This document shows, piece after piece, positions 14,949-44,464 of a stretch of 64,000 bases of DNA (position 1 is the stretch's first letter; each line of letters starts with the position of its first letter). The notes below the pieces were generated by a model that saw nothing but the letters and a program-made list of their open reading frames with translations, was not told the origin of the DNA and did no database searches. This stretch comes from Auanema rhodensis (taxonomy: Eukaryota > Animalia > Nematoda). The DNA lies in NCBI GenBank assembly GCA_964057225.1, contig OZ059899.1, positions 6,076,001 through 6,140,000 on the forward strand. The letters are read 5' to 3'. Made by a program: the position numbers and the translations under genes.

Positions 14949-17145
14949 CTAAGAACAATAGTGTCCGGAACTACAAGGAGCCAATTCGCAGACAACATGT
15001 GGGGTATTCACTTGAGGATTAGCGCTCATCCATAAATAATTAGTTGCCATATACACATTTTGATTACTGTTTGGAGCAGTATTATACCATGGGTGATATT
15101 GTCCCAACTAAAAATTAAATATTATAAAATTTAATAAAGAAATAATTAGTTATAAATAACTTACTCGACTACCATCTGGCCAGGTCAACACACCGAAGTT
15201 ATTTGATAAACCAATCCAAATTAATTGTCCGGGAAGTACTAAAGTTAAATATTGAATGAAAATTTTGTTAAAAAAATAAAATTACAATCCAAAACGAAGG
15301 AGCTTTTTGCTGGAGTTTTAATTGAGACAATATTTGCATTATGTTTCTGTTTACAAAGCATATTGGCTGTTCTGAATGTATACGAAAGGTTGATAGGAAC
15401 ATAACAACCTGAAAAAATTAAACTATGAAAGAAATTTAAAAATTATTAAAATACCAGAAGTTGGAAGCTTTCTAACGGTGCCTAATAAATCAAATGGAAC
15501 TGCTCCTTGAGGACAGAAACAATTAGCTAGAAGATTTATATAATATAACATATTAAAAAAATTAATTTATATTAATTACCATCAAGAATAGCTGAAGATT
15601 CATCGTCAACAGTTGTATATTGATCTAAATAATATCCTGGTGATGCAATTTCTTCTAAACCAAAAGGTACAGCACCGTTGTTAGGCTTAATAGCTGAAAC
15701 AAAAACTTCACTTCATTATACATCATTGATGATTTATACCCTTAGTGATAACAATATTACCAGCTTTCTTGAAATGATTAGCTGCTGTTTTTGGATCAGA
15801 AAAACCGTGATTACTATAAATCAGAATATATCAGAAGACAAGTTCGAACAAGCCTTACTTGTAATCATCAGCAAGCACATAAATAATTTTAGGAGAATTT
15901 CTTCTAGCATTTGGTCCATTTAATTGCCCAATGGCTTTCTCCAAAGCACTTGAAAATGAAAATTCACAAAATAATTAAATAAATAGAAAGTTACTCTTCT
16001 AAGTTCACTTCAGTTGAATTACTTTCATTAAATGGAATTGGAAGAGAAGCCATGTCGGTAACAGTTCCAAGTTCAGCAACAACTTTAGATTTCTCGGAAT
16101 ATACAACAATTCCAACTTGCATATAATTCTATTTTATAAAATATAATATTACTATTAATATATAATATACTTACATTGAATGGAAATCCATGTCTTTGAA
16201 TATTGAATTTTGAGGTCATAGCTACTAAGTTTAACCACATCTATAATAAAAATAAAATGAAACAACTATAATATACATTTGTATTACATTTTGGAATGTA
16301 TCCTTGTCTGATCCTGCTGATTCAACCACAAACATAACGTCACTCCATGCTTTTCGGGGATCATTTCTGTTCATGTATACATATAAGATACAAGTATTAA
16401 TTACAATAAACTTACATGCAACCAGGTCCATTAATGGTATCTGAATCTGGTGTTGGTGTTGGTTCTTCATAAGAAGTTGTAGTTCTGTCATTGTAATATG
16501 TAGTGCCTGTATTCCATGGGTTTCTAGTTGAAGGTTCTCCCCAAGGATATCTAGTTGACTCTTGGTTCCATGGGTTACCGGTAGTACCTTCGTTCCAAGG
16601 ATATCTAGTTGACTCTTGGTTCCATGGGTTACCGGTAGTACCTTGATCCCAAGGGTATCTAGTTGACTCTTGGTTCCATGGGTTACCGGTAGTACCTTGA
16701 TCCCAAGGATATCTAGTTGACTCTTGGTTCCATGGGTTACCGGTAGTACCTTGATCCCAAGGATATCTAGTTGACTCTTGGTTCCATGGGTTACCGGTAG
16801 TACCTTGATCCCAAGGATAACTAGTTGACTCTTGGTTCCATGGGTTACCGGTAGTACCTTGATCCCAAGGGCTTTCTGTGGTACTTGGTAAACGTGGATT
16901 TTTGCTAGACATAGCGGGTAGAGTTGTACCAAACTCAAACTCTTTATCTTTGTTTGAGGATTTTTCCAAAATTTGATTCAAAACTTCAAGAGTGGAGTTT
17001 TTGGTTTCTTTAATATCTTTGTTTGCATTTGGCCGTGCTGGAACGGCAGTTGAGCATGCCAAGAAAGCTGAAACTTATAACAATTATAAAATAAATTATA
17101 AAAAAAGAAAAATTAACCTGCGAGATAGATTATGGTGACTTTCAT
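14949..17145 (-). CDS. Secreted VWA + C-type lectin domain protein (clec-like) with a tandem-repeat stalk
   Basis: Signal peptide MKVTIIYLAVSAFLA. VWA-like part has WSDVMFVVES, VGIVVYS and LEEIASPGY. CTLD part has IWIGL, WPDGS, NWDNITHG, CVY and a terminal VVCELAPCSSGHYCS*. Confidence 0.85.
16493..16870 (-). repeat. 54-bp coding tandem repeat: 6 near-perfect copies plus 1 degenerate (PWDQGTTGNPWNQESTRY)
   Basis: The motif ccaagg recurs every 54 nt (e.g. 16541, 16595 ... 16865), and the repeat is visible in the ORF track. Confidence 0.97.
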
Positions 17146-17418: not shown

Positions 17419-18652
17419 TCACCCGGTACTAGCTTTTCCACTACCAACTATAAACGATCTTAAGTCATGATGCCGACTAACAAATATTAAAAAATTAAAT
17501 CCGGTCTAAAATAAATAAATATATATACATATATATAAATTATTATAATTATTAATATTGTTATTTTATTTGGTATTTTTGGTATTTTTGGTATTTTTAA
17601 TGTAATACTATTTAATTTTTAGCAAACCTTGATAAGAATAAGAAGATAAAGTGCAGATTTAAAGTCGGCACTCCCTATATTCATGTCGATTATAATTTCA
17701 GGAATTAATAAGAATATTACGGTATTAAGCATGATTAATGCTTAAAAATGTAAAGATTGTGTTCTTTCTCAAAAGAAGAAATAATAAAGATTGACTTACC
17801 CATGGTTGTATTACTTTTCAAAAGTTTTTTTGAATTTTGTTGACTAATTATGGTGATGTGATTACCTTTTTTTAATCTCTGAATAAAATTATAAATATTA
17901 TTAAATGTTATTTATATAAACTTTATGTATTGAAATTCCAATGGCAATGTAGAGTAAAGCAGATATTACAATACAAGCATATTGAAAATATAAGAAAAAA
18001 CGACGTGCAATTGGATGAGAAAATTCATAAATTCCACAATATATATTCACTTTTTCATATGCAGCTTTGGATAAAAGAACCATAGCTATGTCTGATGTTA
18101 GAAAAAATGTTGCTCCAATGAATGAAACTATATTATTTAAATATATATATATATTAATATTTACTTACTTGATAATAAAGCTAAAGTATAGTTAGTTTTT
18201 CTATGATAATACCATATCGGAAGAAATGTTGCTAGAAAACGGTCAATGGAATTCATTAAGCTCATATTGCCAACAAGGGTATTTCCCCAAAATAGTAAAA
18301 TTGGAGCTGAGGTTAGAACGCATTCATTACGTAGAATAAGGACATCAACTACAATTGTTTTTTATAATCAAAAATCAAAATATTGCTACCTTCTATGGTT
18401 ATCGAAAAATATTCTAGACGACGACAATTTGAAAGAAAAAATCCAATACTGTATATAATATCCCCTAAAGCCATTCCAGCAATAAATAAAAATTCCTGCC
18501 TTTCCCTATTACGTCTTCTAGAGAGAATTACAGCTACAAGTCCAATATTGAGTAAAGCGAATAGAAAACCTTAATTATGTGAAAAATATGTAAAAAATAG
18601 TATAGTATTTACTAAGAACTGTATTACAGAGTAAATTAATTATCGTTGACAT
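17419..18652 (-). CDS. Nematode 7TM chemoreceptor (Srsx-like), paralog A
   Basis: Seven exons splice in frame. Motifs [31 protein letters not shown] and [13 protein letters not shown], with multiple hydrophobic segments. Confidence 0.82.
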
Positions 18653-19586
18653 TATATCTGCTCAATTGGTTCAAATACCTAAAAATATTTAAAAATTATT
18701 TGTTTTAAATGTAAAGTATGGAGAAAAATATTTGATATTGTTAACAAAACATTAATAACTTAATTTAAATAATATCATTAAAATTTATAAATATAAGAAA
18801 AATATTTGAATATTATAAATATAAAAAGATATACATACTCATTTAATATAACATAATATATGCCCTTAAAAAAAGGAAAAAAAAGAATATAAAATAGTAT
18901 GATTGAGAGAAATAATTCATTATATACATATAAATTAAAAAAAAAAATTTTTTTAATTTATATTATTTCATTTCAACGTATGATCTTGATGCATGTTTAA
19001 TGATGAAAGTTCACATCAATTTAAAATAGTTGCATATGATTAAATAGAATTAATAGATATACACATAACATTAACTTTATACAAAAGTTTTTATATGAAT
19101 ATTAGATTGAAAATATTTTGAAATTTACTTATATATGTATATCTACATGTACATTGACATTGTCGTAGATTTGAACTAATAGGTTATGATGAATTGTATT
19201 AATAACATACATATATAATATTATAAAGATGTGAATATAAAATATATAAAAAAAGAAATAAATAAAATACAATTTTTAAATACATTTTGATATGTATTTT
19301 ATAAAGTTAATTATTACAATATTTGATATTAATTTAACTAACTATATGCAATAATTATAATTTGAACCACAAATCAAATGATAATCTAAATGAAAAAATA
19401 TTTAATTTACAATAAGCTAAATTAAAGAATTAAACTGTGAAATATAAAATAATTGAGATATACATATGATATCTACAACCGATCATGATCATTTGAATAT
19501 TAAAAATAGCTTACGTGCTTGATGTATATATACGTGTAAATTATTTCTTATATTCAAATTTATTAAAAGCAAATAATTTTTAATTT

Positions 19587-20792
19587 TTACTTGAAGCTGA
19601 ATCCAAAAATATCATATTATGATATGAGGAATAGTTATGAAAAACCACCATAAAATTAATTGTTCCCTATAATTATGAAAGCATAAGTTTAAAAAGATGA
19701 AAAAGGGAAAAATATAATTAATTTTGAATTATATATGATTTTTTCCTGTTTTTTCTTTATATTTTAATGACTTGCAACTTATTCACCCTCATAATCATGA
19801 TTATTGTTACAATATTCTCTGCTCCTGTTCCAAGAAAGTAACGATTAAAATCCGAAAATAGATATATTAAAGAATTCATCATAACCAAATAACCTTAAAT
19901 AATTAAAAATTTAAATTTTCTATAATAATATAGTAAATGTAACCAGCTAAAAAAACTCCTTTATGAATATGTATTAGATTATCATTAGATAAGAACCGTC
20001 GACTATTAGTTTTATAAGCCTAAATTGAATATAATATGATCATTTGGTTCATCTCTTAATTGATCTTAATACCTTTCTAATGTATAACATACATCCTATG
20101 ATAACAACGTTACTAACAACTAGAATTGACCAACGGAATATTTTAACTTGTGTATATAATGGTTCGCCAAGTATTGTTTTTCTTGGACACATAACATCTA
20201 CTAAGCTGTTCGGATCTCGTACACCTAATGATAGCCATGTTTCGACAGTGGTTGCGACTATTGGGAGTAGAACAAGAGCTTAAAATGAGCAAAATGTATA
20301 ATTCAAGTATATGAAGTATAATTTTGTTGTAATCTCGTTGTTTAATTTGTACCTATCAACGGCCAAAACACATTTTTCGGTGATTTATGCTTGATGTATA
20401 AATGTGGAGAAGATATAACAAGCACAGCACATAATGTAGATACAAAAAAAGACCATATTACTGACCAAACTCCCATAATTTGAATAAAAACAATTCCATC
20501 AAATACGCATGCAGAATGAGTAATTTCAATTTTTTCTTTAAAGATATCATTTATATAATAATTAATTATATATATTTCATACCAAATATAGTTAATTGAT
20601 AATAATTCATTCGACGGAAGTAATATACTAATCCTGTTAGACAGTATATAAAATCCGAAAAACAAAATGGTAACATCAATAATAAATCAACTTTTGCATC
20701 ATGTACTCGACGAAATATCATACGCAAAGCCAAACACACAACTATACTAATTATAAAAGAATCTAAATATTTAAAAATAAATAAATGAACAA

Positions 20793-20838
<46 letters not shown>

Positions 20839-20879
20839 CCTAAACAGATGAACACGAGAAGATATGTCACATAAGACAT
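19587..20879 (-). CDS. Nematode 7TM chemoreceptor, paralog B
   Basis: Seven in-frame exons. Motifs LPFCFSDFIYCLTGLVYYFRR, IQIMGVWSVIWS and MCPRKTILGEPLY. Same exon layout as its neighbours. Confidence 0.78.
20799..20833. repeat. (TA)n microsatellite in a receptor intron
   Basis: Read directly from the sequence. Confidence 0.95.
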
Positions 20880-21771
20880 AAGATTAATACTGATACAAGT
20901 CTAAAAAAAAAGGAAAAATGTAATAAATAACAGAAAAGGATTAGAATATCAACTTTAAATTTTTTTGAAACGATTGAATAAAAGAAAAATTAAAATAAAA
21001 TAAAAAGTAATAATTCTAATAGAATTATTCTATGATAGTAACAGTATCACTATCAATGTATACATACATAATTTAAATAGATTTTATATTAAATATGTGT
21101 GTAATTGTCATTTGTATTATTCGATTAGATTCAAACTAAATATCATAAGACAATTTAATTTTTTTTTCATGATATACGCTTCAAATTATCAGACATATAA
21201 CATGTATAATTTGGATCAAAATGATGTAATATTTTAAAGTTGATCAAATATTATAAAATAATTTTTATAAAACAACCTATTTATATAAAATATCTTTGAT
21301 AATAAAACAAATAGAAATATGAACATAATAGGAATTCATTTATTTTTTTAAAAATAATTATAATGTATTGATATATTTGTATGTGAATATTTTCAAAAAA
21401 AGAGCAAATAAAAAGCTTAGTATCTTATACAATATTCATTCATCATTTTTTATTTTAAAAACAAAATGATTTTCATCCAAGATTTAAAAAAAAATAGACG
21501 ATAGCGATAATTATCCAAACACCTTTTGTTGTCAACGATGGTGCATACATAGTATTATACTATATGACGTAGGATTATCGAGCTACGTGTACTCACTCAT
21601 ATTGTTGTAAATATTTAAATAAATTTAAATATTATTATTAAAAAAAATGTTTGTTAGTATATTAGTAACTTTAACATATAAGTAATTATTATTTTATTAC
21701 ATTAATAATAAGACATTTGTATATTTAAATATTATTAAACATTTTATACTTAAATACATCCATATATATAC

Positions 21772-21802
<31 letters not shown>

Positions 21803-21851
21803 TAAATTTATATTATTTATATATGTACTTGTATGAATATAATATATGTAA

Positions 21852-23029
21852 TTAGTTAAATTTTCGTCCAATAATAAAGGAACGTAATTCTTCATGCCTA
21901 CACACAAAAATTAGAAAATTCAAAGCTGTCTGTAAAAATTGAAAAAAAAATTGGAAATAAAAAGTAAAATACCTTTATTAAAACTAGAAAATAAAAAATA
22001 ATTTTTTCTTGTGCTGATCCTATTCTTAAATCTATTAGCATTTGTGGAAAAAATAGAAAGATAAATGTATTCATCATAATTAAAGCTGAAACACATTTTA
22101 TTTATATTTAAATGAAACAGGAAAACATGTAAATACCCATTGTTGTATTACTTTTCGATAATCGTTTTGCATTTCGTTGCTTTGATGCTAGAGTAATCTG
22201 TCTAGATACTTTGTATCTCTGAATTAATATATATATATATATATATTATATTATAATATATAAGTTAAATACCTTACGTAAAGCAAAGAAAATTGCTATA
22301 TAAACTATTGCTGATAAAAAAACAAAAAAGAATTGAGAATAATTGATATATATTCCAACTATAGGATGTAAGTATTCTAATACACCACAATCTATACTAA
22401 CTAATGTTTCTAAGATATCATTAGATGATATTAGAAACAACAGATTTGTTAATGTACAAACTGCTGCAATTAAGAATGATACTGCAAAAAAGATTAATTT
22501 AAATTAATAATTTTAAAAAATTTTAATATTACTAAGAATAAGCCGTATTGTATATCTATTAGTCTGTTGATAATACCATATCGGAAGAAATGTTGCTAGA
22601 AAACGGTCAATAGCATTAATCAAGTTCATATTGCCAACAAGGTTATTTCCCAAAAATAATAATGTTGGTGCAGGTGTCTCCAGGCACTCAGAACGTTTTA
22701 CCATGGGATATCCTAAAAATATTCAGAGTAATTAATTAAAAATATTTTAAAAACCATCTAAAGTATCAGGATAGTATTCTAATCTTCGACAAGCAAAAAG
22801 AAAAAATCCAATACTGTATATAATATCCCCTAAAGCCATTCCAGCAATAAATAAAAATTCCTGTTTCTCCCTATTTTTCTTTTGACAAATAATCAAAAAT
22901 ACCAAAAATGTATGCATAACAGCAAAAAGAAAACCTTAAACTTATTTATATAGTATATAAACAGTATAATAAGTTTTTACTTAATAATATACATACAAGT
23001 AGTGCTGATACTAACGATATAATCATCAT
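21852..23029 (-). CDS. Nematode 7TM chemoreceptor (Srsx-like), paralog A'
   Basis: Paralog of 17419-18652 with the same exon structure. Motifs [14 protein letters not shown] and NFLIFVCRHEELR. Confidence 0.82.
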
Positions 23030-23716
23030 AATTTTGAGAAAAATTCGAATAAATATTTCTGAAATGTTAATTAATATTTTAGAAAGAAAAAAGCTTATGA
23101 AAAAAGAATAATTAACAATATTATTTAAATTTTATTAATATTTTAAATTTACATTAAATAAAAAATATATTATTACATTTTGATTTAACCATATTATAAG
23201 ATTAGGTATACAAAAAGAAATAAAAACAATTCATAACTTTACATACAATATATAATATTATAATTTAATATAAAATAGTTAGAAAAAAAGATAAAATATA
23301 GAATATTGTGAAGAAATCGGAAAAAAACTTTGATGATCAAAAGTTAATCTCAACATATATAGTTAGATTCAAAATCTAAAGTTGTAATTATAAGCAAAGT
23401 TATAATTATATGGATAAGGATATTATATTTATACAATAATCATATACGAATAATAAAGATAAAAAGAATTATTGTAAAATATTTATTTTATTAAATAGTT
23501 TATAGTATGATTATTCTAATTGATGTAGCTATATTATTTAATAACTATATTTAAGCTTCTTTTTTTTTTGAGATAACCTAGAAATATTCTATAAATTAAA
23601 TATTTAAATATATAAACAATTTTGAATCTAAAAAATTATTATAATTATAAATTAATATGCATAAATAAATATTTTATTTTCATATAATAATGCTATGTGA
23701 GCGGTTGCATTCTATT

Positions 23717-24806
23717 CTATTTTGACCATTCAACAAGTAAATTATAATGTATAATCATACAATTAAGTAATCCCTTAATATTTTAATATTATTATTGAAT
23801 ATATTTTAACTTCTTACTCTTAAAATTTGTATAATTGTTGTATAATATTCTATAATATGGGATCCAATAAAAAATTTATTAAGATCACTTAATAAATAAA
23901 TTGCTGGATTTATAATAGAAAGCCATGCTATAATAAATATTTAATTAATTATATTTAATTAATTAAAATATACCTATTAATGTTAATGCATTTTCAATAT
24001 TTTTTATTTTTTTTTTGTTCAACTGTAAATAATATTTATGTAAATAAATATTTTGATATATTAATACTTACATGTACTATTATAAGACATATAGTTGATA
24101 ATAATATGGTTATACTCAATAATATCCAACGAAATATCCGAATTCTTACATGCAATGTTTTACCAAGCACAAGCTTTCTTGAGCAGATGAGATCAACTAC
24201 ATCTGGTCCACTACGAGCATACAATGATAATAGAATTTCACCAGTAGATGATAATAATATCCAAGTTAATAATACTTAATTTTACATTTCTTTTGCGTTT
24301 TTATAATATTATAATACTTATAACCAGAATACTTGCTCTTATATGTAGATGCTTTTCGAAAAGTTGAGGAGAAAATAAAAGAAGAACAGCACATATAACT
24401 GATAAAAGTGGACTCCATATTATGGACCAAACACCAGTAATTTGAAAAATGATTATAACATCCTTAATACAATCCATTTGAGTTATCACAAGATTATCTT
24501 AAACTTTATTATACTATGATGATGATTGACCTTTACTATACCTTCAAGACGATAAATGTTTGTTGTTCGAAAATATAAAAGTGTTGATGTTATACTAAAT
24601 AGAATATCAGCAATCCAAAATGGTAAAGTTAAACAGAATATAGTTTTTGAAATATAGTTCCATGTATTTATTAATCGAAAAATAAGAATAGCTATACATC
24701 CTAATACTATAACATCTAAAATAATATTTTATTTTAAACTATAATAATATCAGTATTACTAACTCATACATATCACTAAAACAAAATATGCTACATCCGA
24801 CATCAT
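23717..24806 (-). CDS. Nematode 7TM chemoreceptor, paralog B'
   Basis: Paralog of 19587-20879 with in-frame exons. Motifs LPFWIADILFS, FQITGVWSIIWS and ICSRKLVLGK..IFRW. Confidence 0.78.
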
Positions 24807-25247
24807 TTTTGATTTTAAAACTGAAAAAAAAAAATTTTTTTTTGTTTCATAAACATAGTAAAGTATTTAAATAATTTTATTTAAAACAAAAAGAACAGTG
24901 ATTTAAATGAATATTTATATATAAAATATGATAAAGTAAAAAAATTATAAATAATATGTATATCAGTCAGTAGAATATTCTATAAAAGCTCTTTTTTTTC
25001 TTTAAAAAATAACTATTATGATCAAACATAAATAAATGTATGTACAATCTATATCCCGAATACAACATAAAAAATTAATTAAAATACATTTCTGTGATTT
25101 TTTTTTTGAAAACAACGAAATGAATTTAGAAATAAGAGATCAAAATTTCCAATCATAATATAAGAAAGAGAATTTATTGAAAGATCTGCATCATACATAC
25201 ATATATATATATATAATATATATTGTATATTATATATAAATTGAAGT

Positions 25248-26547
25248 TCATGCTGTTGTCACAAGTCTTGTTGTATGAATATCTGAATAACACCAAATAC
25301 CAAAATCAGAAAACTGTAAAGATATACACATAATAGTAAAGAAAACCTAAAATATAAATAATTATTTTAATAAAATAAAATAATTTTAAAAGAAAAAAAA
25401 AACTTAATCGAAAAACATCAGCTTGTATAGTATAAATTATAAAATACCAATCATTACTTAATGATCGTATAAATTCAATTAAAAATATAAATAAAGAAGA
25501 TATAAACATAGTTAGTCCTATAATATATAAAATAGATTTCAATCAAGGATATTCCTTATTTAATTCTTAAAAAAAAAGGAAAAAAAGATGGAAATGAATT
25601 TACCAAATTTCACAATTGTTCCAACTACTCGTTTTGAATGTAATGGAAATCTCATATTATTAACAACGGATGGATGAACAGGCTAAAGTTAATTATAATT
25701 ATTATATTAACTATGCTTTTCTTTTCTTTTTCTTATTTTTAGGGATTATTATAAAGTTAAAAAATATCAATGTATAGTATTACTTGAATAAACTTACGTG
25801 TTTTGCTAATATATAAGCAAACACGATGGCTATAAAGCCTGAACTAAAGATAGAAATTCGTATGACTTGAGTTAAGCGATAAAATGGTTCTCCGAGAACA
25901 TCAATTCGAAAACATAATCCGGAAATTCGTGTATTCTCAAAATGTTTTCTTTCCATAATCCATAATTCAGTTATAACAGCAATTGTAGTACATGCTACAC
26001 TACCTATAATATTAGTATAATTTATTAATTATATATAATAATATAACCTCCAAGTGGATATAAAGCTATATGCCAATCAAAAACATCAAAAAATGTAACT
26101 GGATGTTTAGCAATATATATTAAACAATATGATGTAAAAGCATTAGTAAATGATATTGACCATGATCCAATATTTTGTATTATAACTACAGGTTCATATA
26201 AGCAATCATACCGTAAAGCATAAAAATCATCTAAAATAAGAATAATAATAATCAAATATAAAGAAATAATTAATATAATTACGATTTCTGGAATTTAACT
26301 GTTTTTCCATACGTTGCCAAGCTAAAAATAAATGTCCCAATGGATAAACTCCATTTAAGACAAGATAAGCAACTATTAATATTAGTTCATTTCGTTCACG
26401 GTGATGTCGAAAAGCACATAAACGAAGAAAAAGTAAAAGAATCCATAATAACGCCAAAAAATCTTAAAATTTTTATTTTTAAAAATAAATAAAATTAAAA
26501 TTAAATATACCTGAACATATGACAACAATAAGAAGAGCTACATACAT
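25248..26547 (-). CDS. Nematode 7TM chemoreceptor, divergent paralog C; phase of the last exon uncertain
   Basis: Reads MYVALLIVVICS/DFLALLWILLLFLRL..., IIQNIGSWS, LCFRIDVLGEPFY. Same exon layout as B and B'. Confidence 0.72.
25302..25758. repeat. Left arm of a 457-bp inverted repeat (3' part of chemoreceptor C)
   Basis: Reverse complement of 28501-28957. The same 78-aa ORF appears on opposite strands, the end coordinates sum equally (54259), and the homopolymer runs I checked match. Confidence 0.95.
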
Positions 26548-27479
26548 TAATATGAAAAATATATAAATATAAATTTGTTGAAAGAAAATTCTTAAACAAG
26601 ATATATTTTAATTTTTGATGTTCAAATTGATTTAAAATAATGTTTTATAATACGTGGGCATCTCATGATTCAATTATATGTTATAACTCATATAATTATT
26701 TAGCTCTGAATATTACTTTCCTTTTTGCATATATTATATTCATATTTTTTTATTAAAAATATTATAAAATTTTAAATTATTTGAATTATTAAAAAAAGAC
26801 CAGAACAAGATCTGCGTATTGCTAATTTGAAACATTTCTTATTAATAATAATATATTTGTATAATTTTACATTTATTTATTATGAAAAAAAATCTTCATA
26901 GACATAAGCATAAAATTTTCCCTTTAAAGCTTTTTCCATTAGTCATCAAGACTACACGAATTCAAAAAGTTGATTGACTTCAAATACCTAAAATCATCAT
27001 TTCAGATAATATTTTAAGAATTTTCCTTCTTTACTTTCGTGTAAACTGTTTTTTAATTCAAAATCATGAAATGAGTAATATGATCGCTTCTGGCAGATCA
27101 TACATATCCAAACATACCGTATCCCTCTTTGTTATTCATCATGTGTAGTTACTGTAATTGTTAATTGATTGACTCTTTTAAACCGTAAAAGTTTGCAAAA
27201 TATCATTTTTTGTAATTGGAAATATAAAAATTAAAAATTAAAAGTCAAAATATAAAAATAATATGAATATTGAAAAATACAAACTATGTAATTCAAAGAC
27301 TTTGTATAAGTATCAATACAATTATTAAGCATAATTTATAAAATGCAGACACGCATAGCTAACAGAAGTAAAAACACAAATGAAATCATAATTGTATTTT
27401 CTTAAAGACAATTTGTTTTTAAAATTATTTCTTTGATCAAAGATATTTCAGTTCCTGTTATCAATGAAATAAAAGGGTA

Positions 27480-27760
27480 AAGGATAAGGGAAGGACTACT
27501 ATTAGAAGATCAACCTTTGAGGAAAGTAGTACTTCTTGGCTTCGAGATATTGTCATTAGTTGATTTTGGTGCGATAATGACTCCCATTAGTTATGAATTA
27601 CCAAAGGAAGCTAGTGAACGAAGCCAAGCGATGTTACCCGTAGAATAGATCGAATTACTAAAGATTCAGAAGACGGAAGTAGTATGGTAGCAACAGTTAT
27701 TATACTAGAAGGACAAGGAAGTAAGATGTTGGTAGAAAAAGACTCATTCCAGATATAAAT
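27480..27760 (+). mobile_element. Degenerate LTR-retrotransposon aspartyl protease relic
   Basis: One frame reads KVVLLGFEILSLVDFGAIMTPISYEL (LVDFGA at 27556-27573), resembling the retropepsin pattern hhD[ST]GA..S.IS. It has in-frame stops, no introns, and a purine-rich, higher-GC composition. Confidence 0.5.
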
Positions 27761-28500
27761 CAACAGGAAGTCATCGATGCTTGTAAACATATTCATACCA
27801 AAGCGCAACGAAGACAATTCATACTGGAATCACCTCACATGCTAAGAAGACAGGAACGTCTTCGAGATTACAATTCTTACCATGTGTGCACCTTGGTTGA
27901 TTGCCTTCTGATTTTCAACTTGTTTATAATTTAACTTCCTCTTTTCAAAATCATATAGAAGAGATGTTGCCACACATAATCATCGTATTTCTTATGATTT
28001 TCAAGCAAATTTCTTTTATATAAAAAAGAATTTCTGATTAGGGTTTTATATACTATACATACATATGTACATATGTGTCAGTTAAGAGGGTTCTTTAATA
28101 TGTAGTAGTAAATAAAATATTTTTTAAAACAAAACCTTAAGTTTCAGAATATATTTCTCATAAATAGTAATAGTTTGAATAAATTAATATTAAATAATTA
28201 AGAAAGAAAGAAAAAATGTTATGAATGTTGTTGTTAACTATCAACTAAAATTATCTAATGATGTGTATCTTTATTTTTTTATCAGAAAAGAAATTGTTGC
28301 TCTTATCAGAAACTATTTCAATTATTTGATTATTAATATGTTGGCTAGAGCACATGAAAAATTTCATGTTTTAGTGTCTAAATGATAAAACTAAAACTGC
28401 GTTCCAAACAGTTTTTCTTGAATAACTTATGTAGAAATAAACAAATCAAAATTTAAGAAAATAGGTTTCTGTACTGTATGATCATGAAGTTATAGATATA

Positions 28501-28957
28501 AACTTTATAATAATCCCTAAAAATAAGAAAAAGAAAAGAAAAGCATAGTTAATATAATAATTATAATTAACTTTAGCCTGTTCATCCATCCGTTGTTAAT
28601 AATATGAGATTTCCATTACATTCAAAACGAGTAGTTGGAACAATTGTGAAATTTGGTAAATTCATTTCCATCTTTTTTTCCTTTTTTTTTAAGAATTAAA
28701 TAAGGAATATCCTTGATTGAAATCTATTTTATATATTATAGGACTAACTATGTTTATATCTTCTTTATTTATATTTTTAATTGAATTTATACGATCATTA
28801 AGTAATGATTGGTATTTTATAATTTATACTATACAAGCTGATGTTTTTCGATTAAGTTTTTTTTTTCTTTTAAAATTATTTTATTTTATTAAAATAATTA
28901 TTTATATTTTAGGTTTTCTTTACTATTATGTGTATATCTTTACAGTTTTCTGATTTT
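28501..28957 (+). repeat. Right arm of the inverted repeat: promoterless duplicate of the 3' exons of chemoreceptor C
   Basis: Matches the left arm. It holds only the last exons and introns, with no 5' exons upstream on the + strand. Confidence 0.95.
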
Positions 28958-29110
28958 TATTTTATATTTATAAGTTAGTTAGAGTTAAATATCAAATAAA
29001 ATGAACGGTAAAGTACTTTCATTCTATTAAAAGTTTATGTTAATTAACTATGCGGAAATAAATAAAAATGAATTTCTTAAAACAGAAATAGAATAATGTT
29101 ATAAAGAGTT

Positions 29111-29112
<2 letters not shown>

Positions 29113-29155
<43 letters not shown>
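29113..29155. repeat. (AG)n microsatellite, about 21 units
   Basis: Read directly from the sequence. Confidence 0.97.
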
Positions 29156-40897: not shown

Positions 40898-43800
40898 ATG
40901 ACTGAAATTATTACTGATGGAGAAGGGCTACGCCACAGGAGCGATAGCATGAAAGCTCTCTCAGTGAATTCAGGTAATTTTTTTAAACATTTCTTTTTTT
41001 TTATTCGCTCCGTATCAACATTGTTCGAGAGTTAAGTAGGGATTACACTCAGGTTCACGGTTAACTCCAACACTGAAATGGTCGTCAGCCTATCCCACAT
41101 TAACATTACTGAGCGATTAATATCTGTTTTCACTACGAATTAGCTATCAGTTTTGGCTGATTTAATTTCGTTTTTTCACTTTCGATTGATTTTGATTTAT
41201 GTTCAATTGATTGATTAAATCGATGGAATCATGTAAGATAAATTGGAGTGGGGGGATATAGAAAATATTTAGTTTTGTTATTAATCATTGGCAACACATT
41301 TTTTTCGGCTTGTGTTACAAAGATTGATTTAGAATTGAAGTTGTTTATTTTTCATTTTTTAATGCTTCGTTTTTCAGACTCATGTAATGATAGCTGTTTG
41401 GGATATTCGGAGGTAGAAGAAGATGAACCTCATTTAGATCAAAAACATCTGAATTTGGTTCATGAAGAATTAGAAAAACTGAATATTGCTACGGATGTGA
41501 TAAACAAACTAGAAGTTCAGTTAGATGGTGCTCGAGCTCTATTCCGGTAAGCTTCTTCTCTTCCGACTCATCTTGTACTAGTATTTTGTTCTTGTTTATA
41601 AAAAAAACCAGCTGAGTGCATTCGAAATTACATAGAAATCATACATGTGAAGTTAGTAAGCGTTAATGTTTGCTCGTAACAATGCTGGTCATCTTGTACC
41701 ATCGTTTTCCTATCTTAGGAACCTGTTTTGCTTTATTTAAACAAGGATCTGTTATAATATCATATGCATATTTCTACTGAATCGTTTTGTAGCATGTTTT
41801 CTCTGCAGTATTATTCAAATTTTTATTCGTTTTCTTTTTAGGGAGATTCAAGGAACGTGGGCAGAAAAGTTGAAAGATCTCTCAAAGAAGTATAGCTCAG
41901 CTATAGCCAAAGCTCGGCCTTATTACGAAGCTAAAATCCAGGTAATTTGACTTTTGAAACCTCAGTTTGTTGAACTTCAGGTTCAGAACTTGATATTTGA
42001 CTTTATTTGCCCGAGCTCAGGTTTTTCTAAATTCCCCGTGTGCTCCGTCAACAGATTGCGCTTGAAAAGCAAATGTCGTGGGGGGTCTTCTTGCGGTCGC
42101 GAGGCATGTGTTTGCTTCTACACCGACACGATCAGTACAGAAGTCTCGCGATTCTCAGCGTTAGCGCGTCATTTCCCTAACGTATAGTTCCTTCCGTCTC
42201 TTGCAAAGCATTTTCTCTCATATTCATGTACAGTGAAGCTTCTTTTCTTTGCAAATTCTTTGCATCTCTTGTGTGCCACTCCCTTATGATGAGCTGCTGG
42301 GGTCTCTGACGCTTAAGCCACTAGATCAAATGAATGAATAAGTCGTTGCAAATCCAAATCACGTTCTGTTTGATGAGTATTTCCTGCAAACTTGGTGTTC
42401 TTATCGAAATTCTATTTTTGAACCCTCGGGGCGAATTGCAATACAATATTTGCTCTAGTTTTGAATGGTTTAGTACCCGTAATAGCAACTGTTTGCACTT
42501 CCTATTTCGGTCCAAAAGCTTCACCTACTATAGGCGGTTGGGGCAAATTAAATATATGGGGTGATAAACGATTCTTCGTATATTTATCTTTTTTTTAATA
42601 AATCTTTTTTCAGGAGCGAAAAGTACGAGAAGATTCTCAACGTTCAGCAATTCGTTTCGAGAGGGCAACATCTTTGCTAGGTGTGGCTAAACAACAAGTC
42701 AGCTTAACTCAAGAAAGTTTAAATAGACAGAAAATAATACAGCCAGAATGTCTTGAGGTTTGTTCATTTTTTTCTCATTTTATATACTATTTTTATTAGT
42801 TTTAAGTCCTTGTGTACATTCAGTCATTATATTTATAGTTCATAGTGCTATGTTTTTTTTAGAATTGAAAATTTGTTTTTTTTTTCATTGTTAAAACCGT
42901 TCCCAGCAAAACATTTTGAGTTCTTTCGAAATACATGGGTTTTTTAGCTCAGCTGTATATATTTTCACAAAAATCTGTAATTGTTAGTTGACTAACAAAA
43001 CCCATGTTGACATATTTTGTTATAGTTACGAATCCATTTCGCCCACTCATAAGTATGACATCATTCTTCTGTATCGACATTCCTTCGTTATCATTCATTT
43101 TCGTTCAAGTTAATTATTTAGTTTTTAGGTTCTCAATCATCATATTCAACGAGTGAGTGAGGCTGAGAATGAACGCATTGCTGCTGAAGAAGAGCACAAA
43201 AATAACTCAGCAAGAATGCTTGAAATGGCGGAACAGATTAGAAAAATGGAAAAGGAACATCGGTAAGAATATTTGATTTTTTACCATTTTGTAAATTATA
43301 TTTTGCAGTTCTTCTATAAAGAAATCAAGAACATACTTCGATCAAAGGCTTGAATTTACTAGAGTATTAGAACGTCAAAAAGAGCTTATTCTGCGATTAG
43401 AAGCTGAGGTTTGTTCTACTTTTTTCCAAATTTTTATAAATAAGCCAAAGTTACATGTGTGTATCTTGATCACTGTATTTGGGCTTATAATACCAGCAGG
43501 TGTCCAAACAAAATGCCAAACGAAATTCAAAATGTCGTGGAGGTTTGCGTGACCTGATCATTTTGAGTGGGCAGATTTTTTATATGAGCCACGAATTTAA
43601 TGGACTTTATTGGGGAAAATTTTCGAAAACTATACAGTTAATATTTTGTTATGATGAATATTTGAAGGTCCGACAAAAAAAGTGCGACTACACTACATCT
43701 TTACGTAATTTGGAAAGGATATCAGACTCAATTCATGAACAACGAAGTATAGGTGGAGGATCTAATATAATCAAGTATGTTGTTTTTCTTATTTTCGTTT

Positions 43801-44464
43801 ATAACTTTTCTTCTTATAGAGCTGAGCTCCCTGCCAATCCTCCTCCTTATTTACCTACCGCTCCTCCTCCTTATGAAGATGATGGGCGGTATAACATCGA
43901 ACAAGAAAAGGTAATTTGGTTGTAGTGTGAAAATAATAAATATTTTTATTCCAGGATGATATGATTGATCCTGTATTATGCCTCATGAGTGAGGATCAAT
44001 GTGGAGAATGGACTACCGCACGCCCACGTAGCTTGGGATCCGGTGTAATTCTACTAGCCCAACAGTTAATGGGAGGTGGAGACAAAGTAGAACAGCCTTT
44101 AGTGTAAGTTTAATATAATCTAGTTTTGTTTACTATTACTTTTTATCTTTTTCAGTCTTGTTTCATCTCAAGCTGATGTGAGTTATCGAACTAGGCCGGA
44201 AGGCATTGGCTCATCACCCGACTCTTCTGATGTTTCATCGTTAGCTAGCTTACGAACATCTGAACCTGACGATGAAATGCTAAGTGGGATGATACGTAGT
44301 CATTCTACCCTTATTCAGGTTCGATCATTTTATTTATATTCCTAGTTTATAGTTTTTGTTTGCAGGAAATAGAATCATCCGTAGATAGATTAGGCCATAT
44401 GTTACGTCGAAGTGTCAGTGATGTTGATCAGGAGAGTGGAGTTGAAAGCTCTTCTGGTCTCTAA
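40898..44464 (+). CDS. SH3BP5: SH3BP5 family Rab11 GEF (REI-1/REI-2/Parcas-like); about 11 exons
   Basis: Canonical SH3BP5 motifs across phase-compatible exons: VHEELEKLNIATDVINKLEVQLDGARALFR, AIAKARPYYE, RFERATS, VLNHHIQRVSEAE, SIKKSRTYF, YTTSLRNLERISDSIHEQR. Confidence 0.92.

Follow-up and report, generated by a model that had tools for sequence, protein, structure and literature searches.

A probable young partial inverted duplication brackets the 5' exons of a serpentine-receptor-like gene in the nematode Auanema rhodensis

A stretch of 64,000 nucleotides of the Auanema rhodensis (A. rhodense) genome (GenBank assembly GCA_964057225.1, contig OZ059899.1, positions 6,076,001 to 6,140,000 of the forward strand), called the window below and numbered from its own first base, contains two identical inverted arms of 457 bp that enclose the first four exons and the upstream sequence of a minus-strand gene for a serpentine-receptor-like protein. 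Both arms carry the same 3' piece of that gene. The structure is probably a very young partial inverted duplication, in which the copy upstream of the parent gene would be a dead 3' fragment. Recombination between the arms, which could turn the enclosed segment around, is a passive structural possibility and not a regulated switch.

The left arm (25302–25758) and the reverse complement of the right arm (28501–28957) agree at 457 of 457 bases, both in a pairwise alignment and in a direct string comparison, an exact match that is beyond what chance can give. The first base beyond each edge of the arms is mismatched, and the same two comparisons detected no similarity outside the 457 bp; the repeat finder had called wider arms (25302–25767 and 28492–28957), of which the intervals above are the exact core. 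The arms are separated by a spacer of 2742 bp, and the whole structure measures 3.66 kb. An earlier, sequence-only reading of the window had described the arms as apparently identical, with a 2742-bp spacer holding exons 1 to 4 of the receptor gene, and the alignments and the exon map agree with it on each count. Genome-wide (180,911,798 bases in 112 contigs), the arm sequence is present at these two loci only, and neither the spacer nor either outer flank has a second copy, except for a simple AT-rich stretch. With two genomic copies only and single-copy flanks, a transposon is not involved. The breakpoints were also inspected for microhomology, target-site duplication and transposon ends, and none was found.

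The receptor gene consists of seven exons joined across GT–AG introns of 44–115 nt, and these give 885 nt in a single intact reading frame, that is, 294 codons followed by TGA (Table 1). Analyzed exon by exon, the gene encodes five strongly hydrophobic segments. The inner edge of the left arm (25758) falls within intron 4, and the arm takes in the first 45 nt of exon 7 before its outer edge (25302). Exon 5, which is held by both arms, shows 50% identity to residues 206–231 of CAI4229933.1, a protein from Auanema sp. JU1783, and this identity is equal in the two arms. The plus strand of the spacer contains no remnant of exons 1–4, and between 26600 and 28500 it has no match to these exons or to CAI4229933.1. 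Because exons 1–4 have left no trace on that strand, the locus was never a whole-gene inverted pair. Taken together, the sharp edges of identity, the missing exon 1–4 remnant and the single-copy flanks argue for a recent copy of the 457-bp piece, made in one step, over an ancient inverted pair of whole genes or a repeat homogenized for a long time.

Whether the two copies could encode different proteins is decided by the splicing of intron 6, whose donor at 25416 is weak (GTTTTT). If a donor at 25404 were used, or if no intron were removed, translation would stop at a TGA (25308–25306) inside the arm and the two products would be identical. In the preferred frame, exon 7 encodes a degenerate helix-7 motif followed by S-D-F, and this aligns to N-S-L-I-Y..S-D-F in a neighboring paralogue (19760–19894) and to N-P-A-I-Y..S-D-L in another (23809–23940). 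Measured against the NPxxY-type motif of helix 7, the receptor gene has a degenerate version only, whereas the paralogue at 23809–23940 has N-P-A-I-Y. The preferred splicing, which was also the choice of the sequence-only reading, is supported because the helix-7 motif is common to the last exons of the neighboring paralogues. That reading had further offered the alternative frame, stopping inside the arm, as grounds for refuting a difference between the copies; homology speaks against these grounds, since it favors the frame that continues past the TGA at 25308–25306. As translated in this frame, the arm would end exactly past the last membrane helix.

Beyond the arm, the left copy continues for 17 codons to a TGA (25250–25248) and the right copy for 6 codons to a TAG (28976–28978). 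The right-hand stop, its AATAAA (28995–29000) and both tails had been placed correctly by the sequence-only reading. In the AT-rich window, however, the mean open run from stop to stop is ~14 codons, and tails of 17 and 6 codons are therefore no evidence of coding. Likewise, AATAAA occurs at 2.0–2.7 per kb per strand in the window (2.7 per kb on the plus strand), and because the hexamer is this common, a polyadenylation signal of the right-hand copy's own is weak evidence.

Table 1. Coordinates of the inverted repeat, the receptor gene and the flanking signals in the window
Feature	Position	Strand	Description
Left arm	25302–25758	-	Last 76 nt of intron 4, exon 5, intron 5, exon 6, intron 6, first 45 nt of exon 7
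Right arm	28501–28957	+	Same gene piece, identical and inverted; exons 1–4 not in front of it
Spacer	25759–28500		First 39 nt of intron 4, exons 4 to 1 (minus strand), ~1.95 kb of upstream sequence
Exon 1	26547–26511	-	37 nt; ATG at 26547–26545; aligns to the N-terminus of CAI4229933.1
Exon 2	26462–26283	-	180 nt; two strongly hydrophobic segments; 65% identity to CAI4229933.1 residues 16–77
Exon 3	26230–26048	-	183 nt; 65% identity to CAI4229933.1 residues 75–145
Exon 4	26003–25798	-	206 nt; donor GTAAGT at 25797; 68% identity to CAI4229933.1 residues 136–203
Exon 5	25682–25604	-	79 nt; third cytoplasmic loop; in left arm; mirror copy at 28577–28655 (plus strand)
Exon 6	25517–25417	-	101 nt; membrane helix 6; in left arm; mirror copy at 28742–28842 (plus strand)
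Exon 7	25346–25248	-	Stop included; first 15 codons (helix 7, S-D-F end) in arm; last 17 codons and TGA outside
Copy of exon 7 start	28913–28978	+	In right arm, followed by 6 codons of unrelated sequence to TAG
AATAAA hexamer, right	28995–29000	+	17 nt past the right-hand stop codon
AATAAA hexamer, left	25173–25178	-	70 nt past the left-hand stop codon

In the favored reading, part of the receptor gene, starting midway through intron 4 and ending 45 nt inside the last exon, would have been duplicated very recently, and the duplicate would have been inserted in the opposite orientation 2.7 kb upstream of its parent gene. The left arm would be part of the working gene, and the right arm would be a promoterless 3' fragment, most likely without function. 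As a side effect, the two arms could undergo homologous recombination and turn the spacer around; the receptor made after such a flip is predicted to be the same through membrane helix 7 and to carry a tail of 6 instead of 17 residues and a different 3' untranslated region (UTR). The sequence-only reading had listed a very recent inverted duplication among its alternatives, and this is the one that fits best, given the sharp edges, the two copies and the lack of an exon 1–4 remnant. The locus also has what is looked for in a young partial inverted gene duplicate: divergence is near zero (457/457), coverage is partial (the piece begins midway through intron 4 and stops at codon 15 of exon 7), and the copies are linked across 2742 bp, inverted and not borne by a transposon (two genomic copies, single-copy flanks).

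Close parallels come from C. elegans, in which recent close duplicates are mostly inverted (>80% in the closest quartile, with synonymous divergence, dS, below 0.03; PMC3194840) and partial duplicates account for 21–38% of young pairs and for 63% of the duplications that arise spontaneously in mutation-accumulation lines (PMC3449122). As far as these two papers relay the survey of Katju and Lynch (2003), the young partial inverted duplicates of C. elegans are like the Auanema pair in their near-zero divergence, inverted orientation and distance of a few kb. In the same accounts they also resemble it in spanning part of a gene regardless of gene boundaries and in the lack of a transposon. Unlike the C. 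elegans duplicates as described there, the copy in Auanema lies upstream of its parent, so that the two copies bracket the 5' exons and the promoter. Young partial inverted duplicates are common in nematodes, and the Auanema repeat is ordinary for them.

Several points weigh against a young duplication or limit what can be said of it. Zero differences between the arms fit a very young copy and a copy kept identical by gene conversion alike. The mechanism of duplication is not fixed by the breakpoints, which have neither microhomology nor a target duplication and do not prove which arm is the original; the latter we infer from context only, as we infer that the right arm has no function. In addition, this pair is the sole inverted repeat of at least 150 bp in the 264 kb of uninterrupted sequence formed by the window and the 200 kb on its right, so that such repeats are not locally dense.

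The ambiguity of perfect identity is the starting point for a different history of the locus. Identical inverted arms lying close together are a known product of homogenization (PMC9731477; PMC3194840), which has been proposed to account for the excess of young inverted pairs in C. elegans (PMC3194840), and either isomer of the Auanema locus would encode an intact receptor. The arms might thus belong to an older inverted repeat maintained by gene conversion, whose spacer flips over evolutionary time as a neutral or near-neutral recurrent inversion polymorphism, in the manner of the flip/flop region on yeast chromosome XIV. However, an old repeat homogenized in this way should still be flanked by degraded similarity outside the converted tract, and pairwise alignment found none beyond the 457 bp; moreover, the arms are short, and the assembly holds no second orientation or alternative contig. 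Such a history is rather unlikely. That the arms recombine measurably in the germline or soma of A. rhodense, with worms carrying both isomers and therefore two tails and two 3' UTRs, is quite improbable. The perfect complementarity of the arms within one stretch of 3.66 kb would also allow a putative transcript spanning both of them to fold into 457 bp of perfect double strand, which could feed small-RNA or RNA-editing pathways and dampen the receptor gene. Inverted gene duplicates are known to give rise to hairpin RNAs in flies and plants. At this locus, the nearest upstream minus-strand open reading frames (ORFs) lie beyond 29685, ~3 kb from exon 1, and a role as a hairpin source is very unlikely.

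The exact identity of the arms could also arouse the suspicion that the real chromosome has one arm only, and an assembly artefact was indeed the remaining alternative of the sequence-only reading. The 180.9-Mb assembly was produced from the inbred A. rhodense line APS4 with PacBio HiFi reads, hifiasm, Hi-C scaffolding and manual curation, and read coverage of gene-rich regions is ~236-fold (preprint 10.64898/2026.08.27.747507). HiFi reads have several times the length of the 3.66-kb structure and cover it from end to end, and the locus is interior to a contig of 21.5 Mb, so that a collapse or a fold-back artefact is unlikely to have produced the second arm. Fold-back read artefacts, furthermore, are not known to have a unique spacer of 2.7 kb such as the one found here. 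Considering the depth and the kind of the reads, an artefact is highly improbable.

The most far-reaching proposal of the sequence-only reading concerns the inversion itself. With identical arms, turning the spacer around would place the right arm directly behind exon 4 and the opening 39 nt of intron 4, thereby restoring intron 4 and exons 5–7. The claim that inversion rebuilds a complete gene on the plus strand is sound: judged from the exon structure, the flipped spacer would give an intact seven-exon gene that differs only past the codon at the arm edge. Less can be said for the claim built on it, that the locus is a functional flip cassette in which regulated or selected inversion toggles the cytoplasmic tail of the G-protein-coupled receptor (GPCR) and its 3' UTR. 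The geometry is compatible with such a cassette, in that the arm edge lies just past helix 7 and both tails have a stop codon followed by AATAAA, and beyond geometry the switch has no support. A Pfam scan detected no recombinase domain in the ORFs of the spacer or the right flank, nor did the spacer ORFs reveal any other gene; an Rfam scan detected no RNA-family match in the spacer. The lengths of the two tails and the frequency of AATAAA, as described above, are of the kind expected by chance, and conservation of either tail could not be shown. A functional cassette is thus extremely unlikely, and we know of no animal nuclear gene that is switched by an inversion of this type.

Inversions between repeats are documented in yeasts, where flip/flop regions include the mating-type switching locus of Ogataea polymorpha (PMC5720833) and a chromosome XIV inversion polymorphism in Saccharomyces (PMC9731477). 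As at the Auanema locus, which has identical inverted repeats around a unique segment, the yeast regions can be inverted by homologous recombination without a dedicated recombinase. In contrast, the yeast repeats are 2–4 kb long and both orientations are documented, whereas the Auanema arms measure 457 bp and one orientation is known. The flip in Ogataea is induced and alters gene expression, whereas the predicted effect in Auanema would touch only the 3' UTR and a short tail of the protein. The yeast flip/flop regions are the nearest mechanistic counterpart. Invertible segments that swap the C-terminus of a protein are found in the R64 shufflon (with the Rci recombinase) and in the tail-fibre switches of the phages Mu (Gin) and P1 (Cin). 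These phage and bacterial switches use short specific sites, an adjacent recombinase gene and long functional alternative ends. The likeness to Auanema is geometrical, since in both cases inversion links one fixed 5' portion of a gene with different possible 3' ends; of the three traits of the switches, none is present at the Auanema locus.

Outside the exons, the ~1.95 kb of spacer upstream of the receptor gene contains no recognizable gene in Pfam and Rfam searches. Within the AT-rich spacer, a patch of raised G+C content (27460–27900) has short ORFs on both strands and is single copy genome-wide; it has no Pfam or Rfam match and may be a regulatory block or what remains of an exon. A (GA)n microsatellite of ~44 bp (29112–29155) is located 150 bp outside the right arm.

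The only database relative of the receptor gene is CAI4229933.1 (235 amino acids). It was the one true relative retrieved in a full-library protein search with exon 4 alone; the second match of that search, a repeat protein, was judged to be spurious. In a word-index protein search, exon 4 found no match and CAI4229933.1 retrieved only itself. The matches to CAI4229933.1 (65–68% identity over exons 2–4 and 50% over exon 5) run across the chosen exon junctions. Its gene model ends four residues past the exon 5 match, as if reading into an intron; the deposited model is probably missing its two final exons, predicted to encode membrane helices 6 and 7. The stored structural model of CAI4229933.1, which covers helices 1–5 only, superposes on class A GPCRs with TM-scores of 0.66–0.74, and its look-alikes in the protein atlas are nematode clusters with Srsx, Srbc and 7tm_1 domains (score 0.96). 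From these models, CAI4229933.1 looks like a rhodopsin-type nematode serpentine receptor. No Pfam 7TM_GPCR match above the curated cut-off was obtained for the exons of the receptor gene, searched singly, or for the orthologue CAI4229933.1, and exons of the neighboring paralogues gave sub-threshold matches to Srz, Srbc and Srsx (E-values 0.003–0.04). Although Pfam membership is thus lacking, serpentine-receptor-like is a reasonable name. The insect gustatory-receptor family PF08395, suggested by a Q-F motif, was rejected for this nematode genome, in which it had one marginal match elsewhere.

The receptor gene is the terminal member of an array of highly diverged paralogues on the minus strand (at ~17.7–18.6, 20.0–20.8, 21.7–22.9 and 24.0–24.7 kb), which show 25–30% identity to it exon by exon, with the order of the exons kept. 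The array as a whole (17700–26550) comprises five very divergent serpentine-receptor-like genes in tandem, none of which reaches the Pfam threshold exon by exon. Two genes of the array are products of a 4.36-kb direct duplication with 78–83% DNA identity (18204–18510 versus 22568–22875). Next to the array, at least six tandem units of 54 bp (16458–16889) lie within minus-strand ORFs in two frames (16234–16977 and 16415–17074, of 248 and 220 codons). This region may be a repeat-containing coding exon; the sole Pfam signal of its ORFs is a sub-threshold LEM match. Farther away, a plus-strand ORF (43491–43922) with an SH3BP5 domain match (E = 1e-7) represents an ordinary conserved gene.

The locus provides a clean, datable example of how partial inverted duplicates form in nematode genomes, and it illustrates that such a copy can put the 5' half of a gene between arms able to recombine. 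If both orientations were present in A. rhodense, the locus would offer a simple natural system in which to measure inverted-repeat recombination in an animal, as well as a rare instance in which DNA inversion alters the tail of a receptor. Should the recombination reading prove true, the 3' end of an animal chemoreceptor gene would be toggled by inversion of its DNA.

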